Positions 53,501-64,000 are shown, numbered from the stretch's first letter. The stretch is 64,000 nucleotides of DNA from Blepharisma stoltei ATCC 30299 (GCA_965603825.1 CBFDEM010000001.1:623919-687918), one strand, 5' to 3'. Notes: generated by a model from the letters alone, not told the origin. Numbers and translations: made by a program.

Positions 53501-55125
53501 TTTTCCAGCTTTTTCCTTCTTTTAAGCTTCAAAATTACGTGCTATCGCCGAATCTGGCGGTAAAAGAACCATTATCGGATGAATTGTTGGATTACATCGC
53601 AACCATTCACCATGAATTCAATGAATTTCAATTTGATGCTATTAGAGAAATTCTACAGGTAACTGAAGGGATATCACTGCTTCAAGGTCCTCCTGGGACT
53701 GGAAAGACTAAAACCATTATAGGAATTCTTTCTGGATTTTTAACTAAAACTAGGCTGCGTAAGTTCCCAAATATCCTGATATGTGCGCCAAGTAACATCG
53801 CAATTGATGAAATCGGACTCAGGATAGTAAGAGACGGACTTTTTATAGGAGGCCAAGATCCTGAAAGCATTATGATCATAAGAATTGGCAAAAGAAAACA
53901 TTGGGAAGGAAAAGATAATGATAATGAAGAAGTAGACGAAATCAAGTCTATAAGGCTAGAATTTCTTATTGAGCAAAAGCTAAGAGAGCTCAATAAAAAA
54001 GATACAAGAGAAGATATTGAAAGCGTAAATAAGCAAATTAATGAATTTAAAGGATTGGTGGATTTTGATGAAGATGCAACTGAGTTAAATGTGTTTATCG
54101 AGCAATTACAGCAAGAATTAGTTCAACTTAAAAAACAATTGAAAGATTACAATGATGCTAAGAAGTCTATAAGAGCTGACTTAGTGAAAAGGGCTAATGT
54201 GGTTTTAACAACCTTGAGCGGTGCTGGCTCTGAAATGCTAAAAGCTAAAACTTTCGATTATGTAATTATCGATGAGGCTTGCCAATCAATAGAACTCAGC
54301 TCATTAATTCCTTTTCAATACAATCCCAAACATGTAGTTTTAGTAGGAGACCCAAACCAACTTCCAGCAACTATGCTTTCAGAAAAGTCCGAAAAAAATA
54401 ATTTTGGCCGCTCTTTATTTGAAAGACTAGCAACAAATGGGGCTGAATATAACTTCCTTAACACTCAGTACAGAATGAATCAAGAAATTTGTGCTTTCCC
54501 AAGCAACTGCTTTTATAATAGCAGACTGGTATGCGCTCCAGGGTTCTTTGAGAGCCGACCAATTCCAGAATGAATTAATCCTTCAGGGATTATGCTTTTC
54601 GATTTAGCATCTTCTGAAGAAAGAAAAGAAGACAGCGAGACAAGCTTCTACAACCGAGAAGAAGCAATATTTATAGAAGAAATCTACCGTTATATAAAAA
54701 CTAGATCTTCAAGCAAAAATATCGAAATAGGGGTAATCACACCCTATGCGAAGCAAACTGAAACAATTCAAACACAACTTACTAGATTTCATCAGAAAGA
54801 ATGGGAAAAGCATATAGAGGTTGGGACTATAGATGGGTTTCAAGGAAGGGAAAAAGATGTGATTATTTTATCGCTGGTAAGAACTGAAGGGATTGGATTC
54901 TTATGGAACAAAAAGAGGATTAATGTCTCGCTTACAAGAAGCAAGTTTGGGCTCTGGGTAATTGGAAAGGCGGACTGCCTAATATCTGATGAAACTTGGG
55001 GAGCATTTATTCAGCATTGCCAAAGCCAGCAGAAACTTGTAACATGCTATAGCTTTAATGATGTTGCCCATTATTTTTCAAAGGAAAGTGCAAGTCATGT
55101 TGAAAGTGATTATCATTATGATTAA
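50551..55125 (+). CDS. Sen1/senataxin-like (Upf1-like SF1) helicase with a large Q/N/P/S low-complexity N-terminus (~1524 aa)
   Basis: QGPPGTGKT, CAPSN, IIDEACQ, LVGDPNQL, QYRM, ITPY, TIDGFQGREKD, RINVSLTR; four ORF pieces in frame across TGAs at 51139, 53407 and 54571. Confidence 0.88.
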
Positions 55126-55838: not shown

Positions 55839-57025
55839 ATGATCAAAAGTGAAGCAATCTTTTGTCTCTTCTACCTGACATTCCTATTCGCTTCACATTC
55901 AAAGGCTGAGAATATTAGCGATAAAATTCAAAATGACCTAAAAGACCATATATATTATCATGTATTCTTTGTTGAGGATTCTTTCAATAATATTAATTCA
56001 GCTGAGAACCTCAGATTTAAAAATGAGCCTCTGCTTGAAGCTCTTTCAAAACAAGCTTTTTCAAGACTAATTACTAATAATTTTAGCTTTGAAGAAGAAA
56101 AATCTTGCAAAAGATATTATAATGCTTTTTCAACTAAAACAAGCGAAGAATATATTTTGTTTCTTTTAGGCAAAATTAGCCAAGATGATAAGATCAGCCT
56201 AAAAAAATGCAAAAATCATAGCATTTATCTTGCATTTTTAAATATTGATGATATCAAAAACATCAGAGAAGTTCTCATAAGTAAAGATCTTAATATCGAA
56301 AACTACTATGAAAAAGAAATTCGTTTTGAGCACATAAATATAAATGAACTGATAATGATTGTAGATTCAGAAATGCTTTCCCAAGATTGCAATCCTACAA
56401 TAAGCCAATGCAAAAACTGCACTCAAGCCAGCCCTGAACTCTGTGATCAATGCAATACTGGATACTATTTAAGTTCGTTTGGTAATGAATGCTGCATTTC
56501 TCCATCTTGCAATACTTGCCCAGAAACAATGCTTGCAATTCTTGTATGCCAGGCTATTATCTTCATGATCCAAACTGTCTGCCCTGCCCAAATGGTTGCT
56601 CAATGTGTAATGGGCCAGATTTATGCCTAGGATGTTTTGATCAGCCTAATTCTATTATATCCAACAATAAGTGCTTTTGTAAAGATAAAAACGCAAGTTT
56701 TATTAATAATAAATGCGTATGCAATGGCAGATTCTTCTCTAATAATGGAGTATGCTCGCCTTGTGGAAAAGGATGTGAAATTTGCCTATCTGAAACAAAT
56801 TGTCTTGGCTGCTTTGATGATCTTGATATGGCAAATGAAGGAAATGGAAAATTCAGATGCATTTATTCGGGATATGTTTTTAATGAAACAGCTCATATGT
56901 GTGATTGCCCGAAGAATTGGATCCCTCAAGGTCTCCAATGTGTAGAAAATGATAGTGGGTCGGGAAATAATTTAGTAGTTTCATGGGCTCTATTAATATT
57001 TGCTGTGATTAGCATAGCTAATTAA
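55839..57025 (+). CDS. Cys-rich (furin-like CxxC repeat) surface protein with signal peptide and hydrophobic C-terminus; contains an apparent frameshift near 56520
   Basis: Frame 1 (55839) runs into CKNC/CDQC/CNTC repeats; the repeats continue in the 56489-57025 frame (ACNSCMPGYY...CLPCPNGC). Confidence 0.68.
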
Positions 57026-58020: not shown

Positions 58021-61000
58021 TTAATAGTTATTATTAAAAATATGATCTTGAGATGAATTTGATAGATTCCCAAAATTCGGAACTTTGTCTTTGTTTTCTA
58101 TAATTTTTCCTTTAAGCTTTGCTAGTTCCATAGCGCTAATTTGATTTCCCATTGAAAATTTGAAAAACATGGTGATATCGACGACTTTATCAGCAATTAA
58201 TAAGCTTGGAAAAAACTTGCACTGAATGGTAATACCAACTGCTACTAAGATACACCACACTAAGAATTGAAGCATAAGCCATAAGATTGGAGAGTCAAAA
58301 CGTGCTAATCAATAAAGAGATGACAAAATATAATTCCATAAAATAGCTATATATGAGATAGTCAACCAAAGATTGACTCGGTGATAATTGTAAGGGCTTT
58401 GCTTAAAGCATAAAAACAGTATTAATACCAAAATGATGATGCAGAAAAGGCCATGCAAAGACTCATCATAGGGTTTTGAAGTTTTAGTTAACACAACAAT
58501 GAGAAGCTGGATAATCGTTTTTTCTATGGTAAAAAGAGGTTTTGCTTTTATATTAATGTAATCATTGGTATTCTCATAATAAATTCTAAAATAAAGAGAA
58601 AGAGGAATATAAGCAATTAAGGAAATTATTGAGAAAACTCCTCATATAAGATATTTATCGCCCCAGCAATAAGTTGCACAGTCATGCTTAATAAAAGAAT
58701 CAGAAACGTTTGGACCAATTCCTTTGTCACATTCAAAAATACTTAATATTATTGAAATCATAGGTACAAACATCATATTTCCTATTATTGGCAGCATAAT
58801 CATTGAAAGATCTCTTGCATAATTCAGTATCTTAAATGTTTTGAAAGCTAATAAAAATGCTGAAGCAACACAGTAGCAAGAAATAATCAATGCTAAATAT
58901 AAGTAGTCTCAATAAGCATCACCTGAAACATTAGAGTCAAAATGAATTACTGAATAATTACTTAACCAGGAAAGCCAAGGAAATAATCCACTTATATCTG
59001 GCCCTTGAGAAATAAATTGAAACAAATCTATAACTATAATCCCCATTACAATATAATCTTCGAAATGGGAATGGATAGGTGTTGTTAATTTTTCTATCAC
59101 TATATCTTTTCAGAATATTTTCCATAAATAAAAAGATTCAATAATTGTAATAAAAATAAATGAGATAGTAATTGCATATAAAATTCCAGCACCTCTTTCA
59201 GAATGAGAAATATTCCGAGCAGGAAATGGGCAATCATTTTCATATGTTACTAAGTCACTTGGTGCAATTGTAGTGTTATCATACCATATAATTTCAGAAT
59301 AAAAAGTAATCAATTGAGAACTACTAGCATCATATTGTCCTACAAGTTCTTCATACATGAATTGCTCTTTTTCATTTCATTTTAAGTTAAAAATCACAAT
59401 TGTAGGTATGCTTCTCTGATTGCCCTCCGGCTCAATCGATATTGACCCAGAGCATCCTAAAAATTTTTGTTTTCTAAGATTTTCATTCATTACTTGGTGA
59501 TCATTCACGTTTTGGCCTTGCTTTATAGTAAACTCTATTCCATTTAGAAGCAGAATTGTCGCATCAAATGCTAAGCAGCGAAAATCTGTCTCATTTCCAT
59601 ATTCTTTTATAAACCCGTTTTTTATTTTTTGTCCATACTCACCAATCCATTCGCCTTGGGCAGTTATAACTGTACCATACAGCAGCTCAATAATTTTTCT
59701 TTGTTGAACTAAATCAGTTTCCCACACAATAGAATAAGCGAGCCTTGCATTAGATAAAAATAAAGCGTCGCCCCTCCTTAATCCTGCGTCATAAAAACTT
59801 TCAACTATATAAAACCAAAAGGGAGGAGTTAAAAAGATAACAAAAAGTCTCACTTTTAAGCTAATTATTTTAGCAAATCAGTTTTTTCATTTAGGATACT
59901 CATCTTTAGTGTAAAACATGTCCATAGTTCGAAGATCAGGACTATTTGCAATTTTCATATTATTTTTTGCGATTTTTTCCACAAAATAATTATAAGTCCC
60001 TAAATTATCTTCGTCGTAGATGATAATAAAATGTTTCCAGCCGAAAACTCCTGCAAGATTTAAGATGACGCCTGTGTTAAATCTTTCATCTTTCGTTACA
60101 GTCATAAATTCAGGAAAAGATGATTTGTTTTGCGAAAGACTTGATATGGCATATGGTGAAACGTTAGGTATCGAATAATTTAAAGACCTCAATGCATATA
60201 TATAGCCGATTGCCATAAAAGGATATGGGGATGTTAAAAACCCCACCCCAGGAGTATTGAGCAACTGAGAAAAGCAGGAATATGCATAACCATAATCATA
60301 AATTGACACTCCACAGTCGCAAACGGAAAAATCTGGCGCGAATAAACAATCTGCCTTCTTAGCACCTGCCGAAAGGAGTCTTGAGACTTTTTGGAAGGAG
60401 GGTAGCGTGCCCGCAGGATTTTCCAAATTTGGTAGAGCAGCAGAGTCAGGCTAAGCGATAAAGCCTCATTTACTTGACAGTTTTGTACCTACAGGGAATA
60501 AGTCTAGCAAGGCCAGAGATACCAAATAGATAATCATTTACGATTACTATTCAGCAGCGGAGCTGCCCCAGGCCTTATGGCCTTTTAATTAGCCAGTTGT
60601 CAAGTCTAGTCTGCTTATCTTTTTTCAGTTTCTTTTATTTCATCCTCATTCCTTTGGTTTTCTTTTGCTCTTGCTACTAGCACCTTCTTGTGGAACCGTT
60701 TTATTGCCAGGTCTATCCTTTTCAGCTCTACTTCTTTTCCTTTTCCCACCATCTGCCTAAACTTTTCCTCAATCTCCCAACCCTGAAGCGCCAATTTCAC
60801 ATTGTCGTGCTTCCTTCAGCGGGCAGGGCCCATAGCAAACCCTTATGAACTTTTTCCCACTTATTTTTTCTATTTCACCTAACTATTTTGGATGCTTTTC
60901 TCTTTCTTCAAGTAATTTTACCACTTTTGGTGTTTTTCACCCTGACGACCGACTCTCCTAATTGCCAAGTATCATAAGTTCCAGTGCTCCAACCGCTTTA

Positions 61001-62945
61001 ACCTTTTTTCCTTCTTTTGCCTTTTTTGCCCTTTTTACCTTTTTTTGATTTTTTAAATTTACCATTTTTGCCTTTTTCACCTCTTTCAATTTTGCTTCGC
61101 CTTGTCCGCTAGGTTCCACTTCTCTACAAATTTCTTTACCCTCATCTTGTCTTTCGCTAACTGTTTTCGTGCAAATCTCTGACGATGACAACTCTCGCTC
61201 ATCCAAAACCTCATCTTCAAGTCTTGCAGCTCAGGCCAGCAGTTTTTCCTCCATCTCTCCTTCTGCTTCCCTATGTATGTCCTCAACTTCTTCCCTTTCA
61301 TCTTTATCGTCTATATCAGCTTCATCCATTTCATCCTCAAATTCCCATAGTTCATCTTCCAACTTCTCTAGCTCATCAAACGCCTCATCAATTTCTTTTT
61401 CAGAGTCAGCAGCAATTACTGCAAAATCTCCAGCTATACGCTGAAGTAGCTTTTTCTCAGTTTCGAGTATTCACCATTTTCTCTGCCTCACAAATAAATA
61501 GTACCAAATAGATAATCACTTGGCCATCCAGCGTTATATCAAGGGATGCTCTGGGCTAAAATTTTCATCTTGGCCGACGGCCTAATCATTATAAGTAACC
61601 CCGTTTTGTCCAGTATCTTTAATTTCGGATTGCGAGTTCATGCCCTCACCTGGGAGGAGCAAAGGAGTGAAAGGCCGTGCTTAGGCTGGCAAGCAGTGGC
61701 AGAGCGGAGCAAAGGCGTGAAAAAGCATTATAGCTTACCCGGAGTTATCCTATAATAATCGAAGTTAAAAAGTTAAAACACTCCGCAGTCGGTATCAACT
61801 ACTTTTATTTTAAAGTTGTCCAATGAATGCTTATTTTCCCACAGTTCTAAAGCGTAAAGCTCTCCATAAACAAATTTTAATGTTGAATTTTCAGACAAAC
61901 TCCCTGGATTTGAAGTCCCATCAGCGATTCATATAGCAATATCTGTAGTAGGAGAATTTGGAATTTTTGAAGAATTTCCTGGATATACTAAAGGCTTTAC
62001 TAATGTCAAAATTCCATTAAAAATATTTCCTACTAGAAGATTTTCACTATTTTTGGTATTGATTAGAGTAAAATTGGACAGTGGGTGATGATCCTCTGTA
62101 TTTTTACTTAGAAACTCTCTGAGGGCTAAAGAGTCATATATTGAAATAAAACTAAGAATTTGTTTTAAAAATTTCACAAATGCTAAGCCTTCATAATTAT
62201 AATAGCTATCAGCTAATTCTAGTCCTGATTCGCAGTAACTAACAACCCCATTACCATAAAGTCCCCAAAACCCTTTATTTCCTATAATGGCTCCAGTCCC
62301 AATATAAAGCAAATTGCTCTTTTCTAAACTTTTTAATAATAATTTTGTACTTTCCCCCCTATTTAGAATTACAATATTTCTTATCCCAGAAGCTTGAACT
62401 ATTTTCCCAATAAATAAATCTGCCAAGCTTTGATCATTGCTGTTTGAGAAATAAAATCATTGATAATTCTTATTGGAAAAATAATTTAAAAATCCGTCAT
62501 CTTCGCTATAAGTTTGGTCAGAAACTACAATGAATGTTTCTCAATTTAAATAGGAAACAATTGAAATCAAAGCTCCAATCTGATCCTTCAAAGAATTATG
62601 AATAAAAAATTCCCACTCTGAGTATGTGCTCGAAGTTTCTATAATAGAAGCGATAATAAAATGTTTTTCTTCTGCTAGCTCTTTTATAAGCTCAGATAAA
62701 GAGGCGCTATAAGTAAGGTCGAAAACTATATTTGAAACATCTGTAGCCAGCTTTAGATCTTCGGAGGTTTCTATATAAGTTACATTAAGGTCAAGTTGAC
62801 CTTGAAAATTTTGAAGTAGCAAAGAAGAGATTTTCAAAGCAAGTTCTAAATTTGTGAAAGAACTATAAAGAATATTAGCAGTAAGCTGAGATTTGACAAA
62901 AATAGCCATAAAGAGTATGATTCGTAAAAACTTGGATACTAGCAT
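58021..62945 (-). CDS. Receptor-like protein: signal peptide + two periplasmic-binding-protein/ANF-receptor (Venus flytrap)-like lobes + multi-TM domain (~1150 aa), interrupted by an insertion
   Basis: LISIVSYLNW and LNLAGVFGWKHFIIIYD helices; LSQNKSSFPEFMTV; AFDATILL; KFLGCSGSISIEPEGNQR; then several TM helices. Both halves are open with TGA=Trp and join in frame (DTDCGV|SIYDYG) if 1472 nt are removed. Confidence 0.75.
60306..61791. mobile_element. Outer insertion flanked by a 14-bp target-site-like direct repeat
   Basis: acactccacagtcg (60306-60319) and acactccgcagtcg (61778-61791), one synonymous mismatch; ends in aagttaaaaagttaaa; visibly more GC-rich than the host gene. Confidence 0.82.
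60520..61518 (-). mobile_element. Inner nested insertion flanked by a perfect 17-bp direct repeat; decayed coding relic, possibly a 5'-truncated non-LTR retroelement
   Basis: taccaaatagataatca at 60520-60536 and 61502-61518; purine-rich, broken minus-strand ORFs (60615-61480); GC hairpins near the minus-strand 3' end. Confidence 0.68.
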
Positions 62946-63504: not shown

Positions 63505-64000
63505 TGTGTTAGGGTGTTAGGGTGTTAGGGTGTTAGGGTGTTAGGGTGTGTTAGGGTGTTAGGGTGTTAGGGTGTTAGGGTGTTAGGGTGTTAGGGTGTT
63601 AGGGTGATTAGGGTGTTAGGGTGTTAGGGTGTTAGGGTGTTAGGGTGTTAGGGTGTTAGGGTGTTAGGGTGTTAGGGTGTTAGGGGTGTTAGGGTGTTAG
63701 GGTGTTAGGGTGTTAGGGTGTTAGGGTGTTAGGGTGTTAGGGTGTTAGGGTGTTAGGGTGTTAGGGTGTTGAGGGTGTTTAGGGGTGTTAGGGTGTTAGG
63801 GTGTTAGGGTGTTAGGGTGTTAGGGTGTTAGGGTGTTAGGGTGTTAGGGTGTAGGTGTTAGGTGTTAGGGTGTTAGGGTGTTAGGGTGTTAGGGTGTTAG
63901 AGGTGTTAGGGTGTTAGGGGTGTTAGGGTGTTAGGTGTCAAGGTGTTAGGGTGGTTAGGGTGTTAGGGTGTTAGGGTGTTAGGGTGTTAGGGTGTTAGGT
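63505..64000 (+). repeat. Telomere, (TGTTAGGG)n = (CCCTAACA)n, ~60 units
   Basis: 8-bp repeat runs to the window end with the G-rich strand pointing 3' outward; CCCTAACA is the Blepharisma macronuclear telomere unit. Confidence 0.96.

Follow-up and report, generated by a model that had tools for sequence, protein, structure and literature searches.

The window analysed here, a stretch of 64,000 nucleotides, is the right end of macronuclear (MAC) contig 1 of the somatic genome of Blepharisma stoltei ATCC 30299 (GCA_965603825.1, CBFDEM010000001.1:623919-687918). The last gene before the right telomere of this contig is a receptor gene on the minus strand, the coding sequence of which is split by an insert of 1458 nt. 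This insert is bounded by two copies of a 14-bp direct repeat, faces an exact empty site in the closest paralog of the gene, consists of one element nested in another, the inner one with the 3' end of a long interspersed nuclear element (LINE), and is retained both in the MAC reference and in a public record of the same genome that includes internal eliminated sequences (IESs). In the genes of this region UGA is read as tryptophan, and UAA and UAG are not read through. The gene, the insert and the chromosome end are arranged as follows, with positions counted from the first nucleotide of the window.

61779-62945, minus strand: the receptor gene's upstream half, which counted from the first ATG (62945) has 389 codons, with a signal-peptide-like N-terminus and ending ...VVDTDCGV
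61778-61791, minus strand: upstream copy of the 14-bp target-site duplication, CGACTGCGGAGTGT
60320-61777: whole insert, 1458 nt, 39-44% G+C compared with 28-31% in the flanks
60306-60319, minus strand: downstream copy of the 14-bp target-site duplication, CGACTGTGGAGTGT
58021-60318, minus strand: downstream half of the receptor gene, beginning DCGVSIYDYG, which holds the remainder of the ANF_receptor domain and, C-terminally, a hydrophobic region; stop codon TAA at 58023-58021
63506-64000, plus strand: telomeric repeat, TGTTAGGG on the given strand, equal to CCCTAACA; about 500 nt, lying about 560 nt past the start codon of the receptor gene

As the DNA stands, the upstream half reads ...VVDTDCGV, followed by a phenylalanine and then by a TAA within the insert. 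Both halves are open by themselves, since TAA and TAG are counted zero times in the frame of the gene (62945-61779 and 60318-58024, with UGA as tryptophan), compared with 88 and 50 times in the other two frames. When the insert and one copy of the repeat are removed, the halves join in frame to give 1150 codons. An earlier note on this DNA, made from the sequence alone, had described a 1472-nt insertion with a 14-bp direct repeat, the precise removal of which restores a receptor open reading frame (ORF) of about 1150 amino acids (aa) with no TAA, TAG or frameshift in either half. This description holds in all its parts: 1458 and 14 nt make 1472, and the two copies of the repeat differ at one position only, a C/T difference at a CpG. 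The halves were concatenated solely for codon counts and for the paralog alignment; in searches, the halves and their UGA-free pieces were used separately. The downstream half matches the Pfam family ANF_receptor (PF01094) with E = 1.4e-11 and 44.5 bits against a cut-off of 25.4, the match covering profile positions 37-155 directly past the junction and, in a second part, positions 174-350. Given that profile position 37 falls ten residues past the junction, the insert splits the ligand-binding domain, at the conserved TDCG motif. The C-terminal region is probably multi-pass and membrane-spanning, as suggested by the hydrophobic stretches in its translation; no Pfam family matched this part of the gene.

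Genome-wide searches were performed on the MAC assembly (41.46 Mb, 64 contigs). The receptor family counts more than 150 paralogs in the MAC genome, among them five close ones with open frames of more than 1000 codons. The closest paralog (C1:9694-12243), near the opposite end of the same contig, is 89-94% identical to the split gene. Its alignment with the window reaches 61778 on the left flank and sets in at 60319 on the right flank, and the two flank alignments overlap in the paralog by exactly 14 bp (C1:11397-11410), the 14-mer being found there once. Furthermore, the restored junction context aligns with the paralog over 228 nt with no gap, and an intact paralog is continuous over the junction point (...TNTDCGVSVYD...). 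Hence the 14-bp repeat is not a chance match, given an empty site with a single 14-mer in the paralog. A protein word search with the 143-aa piece beside the junction retrieved nothing but the 131-aa annotated protein of the paralog. The closest paralog is itself a fragment, made of a 560-nt upstream region and the first 668 codons and annotated as two proteins of 338 aa and 131 aa, and its identity to the window is nearly equal in non-coding (90.5%) and coding (89.8%) sequence. Matches to several other family members contain in-frame TAA or TAG or are fragmentary, and decayed copies are probably common in this receptor family.

The insert is found as a single copy in the MAC assembly, which answers the genome-wide search for further copies that the earlier note had proposed, and its structure is nested. 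Indeed, a perfect 17-bp repeat, TACCAAATAGATAATCA, flanks an inner element of 962 nt, as expected from the claim of that note that the insert had been re-invaded by a second element. The remaining sequence (60320-60519 and 61522-61777) makes up an outer element of 476 nt. The parts of the insert are listed below in the direction of transcription of the receptor gene.

61522-61777: segment A of the outer element, 256 nt, with an internal direct repeat of about 50 nt and an A-rich end at 61761-61777 (plus strand)
61502-61521: inner duplication, first copy, with a perfect stretch of 17 bp (61502-61518) that extends to 20 bp if one mismatch is allowed
60540-61501, minus strand (sense): inner element, 962 nt, with a unique 5' body and the 3' end of a resident LINE lineage
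60961-61527, minus strand: open frame of the inner 5' body, acidic and then lysine-rich, of low complexity, annotated as a 189-aa protein (60958-61527)
60575-60880, minus strand: remnant of the C-terminus of LINE ORF2, IDxAIKRFH ... LDNWLIKRP and stop, annotated in part as a 72-aa protein (60615-60833)
60540-60590, minus strand: LINE-type 3' untranslated region, made up of a first hairpin whose loop contains the ORF2 stop codon TAA (60575-60577), then another hairpin, and finally a short end rich in A
60520-60539: second copy of the inner duplication, 17 bp perfect (60520-60536), 20 bp with one mismatch
60320-60519: segment B of the outer element, 200 nt

The 3' end of the inner element is LINE-derived. 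Over its last ~100 codons the inner element is colinear with the C-terminal part of ORF2 in LINE copies on contigs 25, 43, 45 and 60, in which the C-terminal motif stands about 1 kb downstream of the match to the reverse transcriptase family RVT_1, and tblastx of the inner 3' end with LINE copies gave E = 9e-5 and 5e-4 against ~0.2 Mb of loci. The motif common to all of them is IDxAIK(R/T/L)(F/Y)H, 37 residues, (K/R)(I/L)(T/D)xW(M/L)xxxP and a stop, the spacing of 37 residues being identical. In the inner element this remnant is decayed: an A-run contains one frameshift, and upstream of it the frame is broken at other points too. The likeness extends to the predicted structure of the 3' untranslated region: the first hairpin is GGCC-ATAA-GGCC in the inner element and GGTCC-ATAA-GGACC or GCCC-ATAA-GGGC in its relatives, the second hairpin is common as well, and 5 of the 12 predicted pairs stay paired through changes on both sides. 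As for the 3' tail, the inner element closes with a short stretch rich in A/T, which is not a clean tail, whereas the relatives carry (GATA)n or an A-run. The 5' body (5' 620 nt) matched no Pfam family, and searches of the MAC genome at E<1 gave it no relatives, in DNA or in protein, save low-complexity matches.

The resident LINEs display the same type of 3' end: a 5-6-bp hairpin has the TAA that stops ORF2 in its loop of four bases, another hairpin comes next, and the tail is (GATA)n or A-rich. Such stop-in-loop ends were observed at L030:355-400, L034:352-398, L055:2838-2884 and L002:1509-1562, and at 60540-60590 (minus strand) of the window. The stop-codon hairpin structure may be a recognition element for the LINE reverse transcriptase. 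A second short copy of the inner 3' end is found at C35:15359-15408 (C35:15375), 88% identical over 50 nt and ending in an A-run; similarity upstream of this copy is weaker, and it sits in AT-rich sequence (L002:1487-1588).

Coding sequence for mobility was looked for over the whole insert. Pfam searches of its open frames gave no match to RVT_1 or to an endonuclease family, tblastx against the reverse transcriptase regions of 30 MAC LINE loci gave no match either, and the insert is accordingly non-autonomous, with no coding sequence for reverse transcriptase or endonuclease. An Rfam search of both strands, with E up to 1, gave no match, and thus no tRNA, 5S or 7SL-type head of a short interspersed nuclear element (SINE) and no self-splicing intron. 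No terminal inverted repeats joining the ends of the insert were detected, and the 14-mer contains no TA. At the end of the outer element beside the 14-bp repeat lies the 17-nt A-rich stretch on the plus strand (61761-61777), which is not a clean tail either. When the outer element was aligned at the DNA level to LINE 3' ends nothing rose above shuffles, the same test having also missed a true relative, the inner element. Taken together, the earlier claim of a foreign insertion with duplications of the size left by retrotransposition (about 7-20 bp) is supported by the 14-bp and 17-bp repeats and by the origin of at least the inner part from a retroelement of the kind that has no long terminal repeats (non-LTR). 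Two other origins were considered and rejected. A cut-and-paste DNA transposon or a miniature inverted-repeat transposable element (MITE) does not agree with ends free of terminal inverted repeats and with duplications of 14 and 17 bp, and we know of no DNA transposon superfamily that duplications of these lengths would fit. A processed pseudogene was discarded as there is no parent gene, the inner 5' body having no more relatives in the MAC genome than stated above.

The germline context of the locus is given by the public MAC+IES record GCA_914767885.1, in which contig 1 was found via two neighbouring UGA-free proteins. This contig measures 891 kb in the MAC+IES record compared with 688 kb in the MAC assembly. 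The record is collinear with the window and shows nine extra segments, the IESs, in the last 17 kb. The block 59870-62110, with the whole insert inside, is identical in the two records and no IES is called in it. Three of the IESs belong to the receptor gene and are removed cleanly from the MAC, two of them being BogoMITE-like; the scars are at the following positions.

62108-62110: scar TTA in the upstream half, of a 345-nt IES with TTA ends and C-rich inverted ends that match the published BogoMITE terminus (PMC9942856)
59870-59872: scar TTA in the downstream half, of a 313-nt IES with TTA ends, BogoMITE-like
58948-58953: scar in the downstream half, of a short IES of 77 nt

The paralog fragment has neither an IES nor the insert over the whole homologous stretch; therefore both MITEs and the retro-type insert entered after the gene duplication. 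Two BogoMITEs, which are Pogo/Tigger-derived MITEs, thus invaded the same gene after the same duplication as the insert. With their TTA duplications and C-rich inverted ends they are removed cleanly; the insert has neither of these end features and stays. With ciliate IESs in general the insert shares its position within a gene, its direct repeats and the fact that precise removal restores the frame. However, an IES is defined by its absence from the somatic genome, whereas the insert stands in the somatic reference. In addition, its 14-mer has no TA and its ends no inverted repeats, the features used by the PiggyBac-type excisase, although about 16% of Blepharisma IESs likewise have non-TA repeats. 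The insert thus does not look like an ordinary IES. The insert shows no similarity to the nine nearby IESs, and its G+C content (~41%) is at or above theirs (22-41%).

Among these nearby IESs the terminal repeats measure 2-11 bp. One of 404 nt has an 11-bp terminal direct repeat, TGCAATACTTG, and no inverted ends (scar 56508-56518; L059:10681-11084), and another of 200 nt, inside a helicase gene, has a 9-bp repeat, TGATGAAAT, and no inverted ends (scar 53805-53813; L059:7262-7461). Both may go back to old insertions of a different kind, with excision taking place at the duplications. Between window positions 58948-59872 and the MAC+IES record (L059:13827-14751) a single base differs, in the terminal repeat of the 77-nt IES (TACTGA compared with TAGTGA).

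The depositors annotated the locus as four genes, with products of 378 aa, 189 aa, 72 aa and 731 aa. The 378-aa protein is the upstream half read from the second ATG (62909) and the 731-aa protein is the downstream half read from the first methionine past the insert, so that they are two halves of one gene, whereas the 189-aa and 72-aa proteins both lie within the insert and are retroelement remnants.

We consider it fairly probable that the locus results from two successive insertions of the target-primed retrotransposition type, retained in the soma, which have made a young pseudogene out of one member of this large family. The outer element would have inserted at the TDCG motif within the ANF_receptor domain, with a duplication of 14 bp, and a 962-nt non-autonomous derivative of the resident LINE lineage would have landed inside it and duplicated 17 bp; in an alternative order of events, an already nested composite would have been copied in as one unit. 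As the insert offers no inverted repeats and no TA or TTA ends, genome editing would leave it in most or all somatic copies. The somatic gene would then be cut into an N-terminal product of 390 residues (378 as annotated) and a 731-residue downstream frame which, as it begins past the insert, is without the N-terminal signal-like sequence of the gene. We infer that the insert is inherited through the germline and that the split gene has lost its function, and the latter is most likely a young pseudogene.

LINE-derived sequence in the somatic genome of Blepharisma stoltei has already been published (Seah et al. 2023, PNAS, PMC9942856), and the insert is a new example of this class of somatic retroelements. 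According to the model of these authors, foreign DNA without target sites for the excisase escapes excision and is deleterious inside a gene. The locus provides a natural comparison for this model, as after one duplication the same coding sequence gained two MITEs and a nested retro-type insert. The MITEs, with TTA ends and inverted repeats, are erased from the soma, whereas the retro-type insert, with its long duplications, stays and breaks the gene. This contrast illustrates the published Blepharisma model and does not overturn it. Likewise, a non-TA IES at this locus would not be new, given that 6,566 Blepharisma IESs (~16%) with non-TA terminal repeats have been published (PMC9942856).

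The likeness of the insert to the somatic non-LTR sequences of PMC9942856, for which three families are published, consists in the same genome, the retention in the MAC and an inner element that ends like LINEs with an apurinic/apyrimidinic endonuclease and a reverse transcriptase (APE/RT). It differs from them in three ways: it has no reverse transcriptase or endonuclease part; its inner 5' body and its whole outer element are without relatives in the MAC; and it is nested, lies inside coding sequence and has an exact empty site in a paralog.

In eel, UnaL2 and UnaSINE1 exemplify a stringent type of 3' stem-loop recognition, in which SINE-like elements carry a LINE-derived 3' tail. Like this pair, and like internally deleted or otherwise non-autonomous LINE derivatives, the inner element carries conserved hairpins in a 3' end of LINE type, lacks its own reverse transcriptase and is flanked by a 17-bp duplication, and mobilisation in trans by a partner LINE would, by analogy, explain these features. 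However, no partner LINE with a near-identical 3' end was found in the MAC assembly, the homology of the inner element being at the level of protein and structure only, and the inner 3' end, present in two MAC copies only, does not belong to a family that proliferates there.

The state of the receptor gene was examined against the paralog fragment. The earlier note had proposed a comparison of nonsynonymous (dN) and synonymous (dS) substitution with paralogs; performed against this closest fragment, it gives a dS of 0.21, a dN of 0.061 and a ratio of 0.30. The fragment carries one UGA-to-UAA change, three frameshifting deletions and the truncation at codon 668. When amino-acid changes were polarised with five intact outgroup paralogs, 32 fell on the branch of the gene and 33 on that of the fragment, and at sites invariant among the outgroups the gene shows 6 changes and the fragment 8. 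Hence the split gene is not measurably better conserved than a dead paralog. The insertion was dated by the mismatches in the repeats, either 1/31 (inner duplication taken as 17 bp) or 2/34 (20 bp), and the neutral expectation was calculated with 4.0% of possible substitutions creating a stop and with a ratio of indels to substitutions of 7 to 52 from the upstream non-coding alignment. Had the gene drifted neutrally since the insertion, it would be free of disabling lesions with a probability between 0.0015 and 0.31, according to the way in which repeat mismatches and indels are counted. The earlier note had taken an intact gene beside a decayed insert as a sign of continued selection, a claim that finds little backing here: the probability just given spans 0.0015 to 0.31, and the insert may have decayed before it arrived, in case it was copied in whole as a nested composite that was defective already. 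A recent insertion would be compatible with the intact frame, which lends at most mild support to continued selection.

Several observations weigh against two retrotransposition-type insertions in a young pseudogene. Firstly, no relatives of the outer element were found in the MAC genome, and that it may be a retroelement at all is suggested by two features, the length of the 14-bp duplication and the A-rich end, from which its mechanism of insertion would have to be read. Secondly, the 1150 codons of the gene are free of lesions, compared with one TAA and three frameshifts in the 668-codon paralog. Thirdly, the decay of the insert and the mismatch in the 14-bp repeat, if they arose in place, would predict lesions in the gene as well, and a lesion-free gene would have the probability of 0.0015-0.31 stated above. 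Lastly, partial excision has been reported at some somatic LINE loci of this species (PMC9942856).

Such partial excision is the first of the other explanations, and we regard it as possible though on the unlikely side. The insert would be an 'IES in the making', as the earlier note had put it, removed by genome editing or by recombination between the 14-bp repeats in the polyploid MAC, so that some intact receptor is made and selection on the gene continues. The lack of any disabling lesion over the 1150 codons of the gene, where the 668-codon paralog fragment has four, would agree with this, as would a removal at the repeat that is exactly in frame, the publication of partial excision for somatic LINE loci and of 6,566 non-TA IESs in Blepharisma (PMC9942856), and the occurrence nearby of IESs with 9-bp and 11-bp terminal repeats. 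However, the insert stands in the MAC consensus, no IES is marked in or around it in the MAC+IES record, no alternative contig free of the insert is present in the assembly, and no annotated model spans it. In addition, the repeat has no TA and the insert no inverted ends, the amino-acid change on the branch of the gene equals that of the dead paralog (32 compared with 33), and a recent insertion alone also predicts an intact frame. The specific proposition that the insert is deleted exactly at the 14-bp duplication in a share of the somatic copies, with a receptor that is partly functional and under selection, seems unlikely to us. If it were true, a retroelement without transposase-type ends would have been caught entering ciliate DNA elimination, and the two cleanly excised MITE-derived IESs of similar age in the same gene would serve as an internal control. 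That excision would act as a switch, turning the receptor on or off, is a less likely reading and pure conjecture. As the restored junction is exactly known, the locus can be used for testing whether retroelements begin to be excised.

A polymorphic insertion, present in one germline allele or in this strain only, of which the assembler kept the insert-bearing form, appears rather improbable. Intact frames and near-perfect repeats fit a recent event of this kind, and PMC9942856 mentions that some LINE loci are possibly absent from some of the population, yet the assembly contains one form of the locus only. An assembly artefact, in which the assembler joined two paralogs via a repeat or built foreign DNA into the contig, is very improbable. 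The family does offer more than 150 similar copies, the locus adjoins a telomere, and the dS from the paralog differs between the halves (0.23 compared with 0.17). This difference is small, however, resulting from 50 and 26 synonymous differences; moreover, a misjoin would not duplicate exactly the 14 bp found once in the paralog, nor would it yield a second, nested 17-bp duplication, and the insert is unique sequence and not a repeat that would confuse an assembler. Finally, splicing of the insert from the RNA as an intron deserves hardly any credence and was rejected, since apart from the restored frame nothing speaks for it: inspection of the sequence by eye revealed, within the two repeats or beside them, no GT...AG pair that joins in frame, no spanning model is annotated, Rfam gave no match including self-splicing introns, and introns in the Blepharisma genome paper are said to be almost all 15-16 nt long. 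As to the germline origin of the insert, a purely somatic insertion would be unlikely for a nested and diverged element, given that the MAC is made anew in each sexual generation.

A last observation concerns the contig ends that carry receptor paralogs. The paralog matches at the left ends of contigs 1 and 23 (C1:1-36000 and C23:1-36000) agree over at least 35 kb; their coordinates are shifted by 14-18 nt against each other, and most of their scores are identical. These two ends may be alternative forms of one chromosome or a collapsed or duplicated end.

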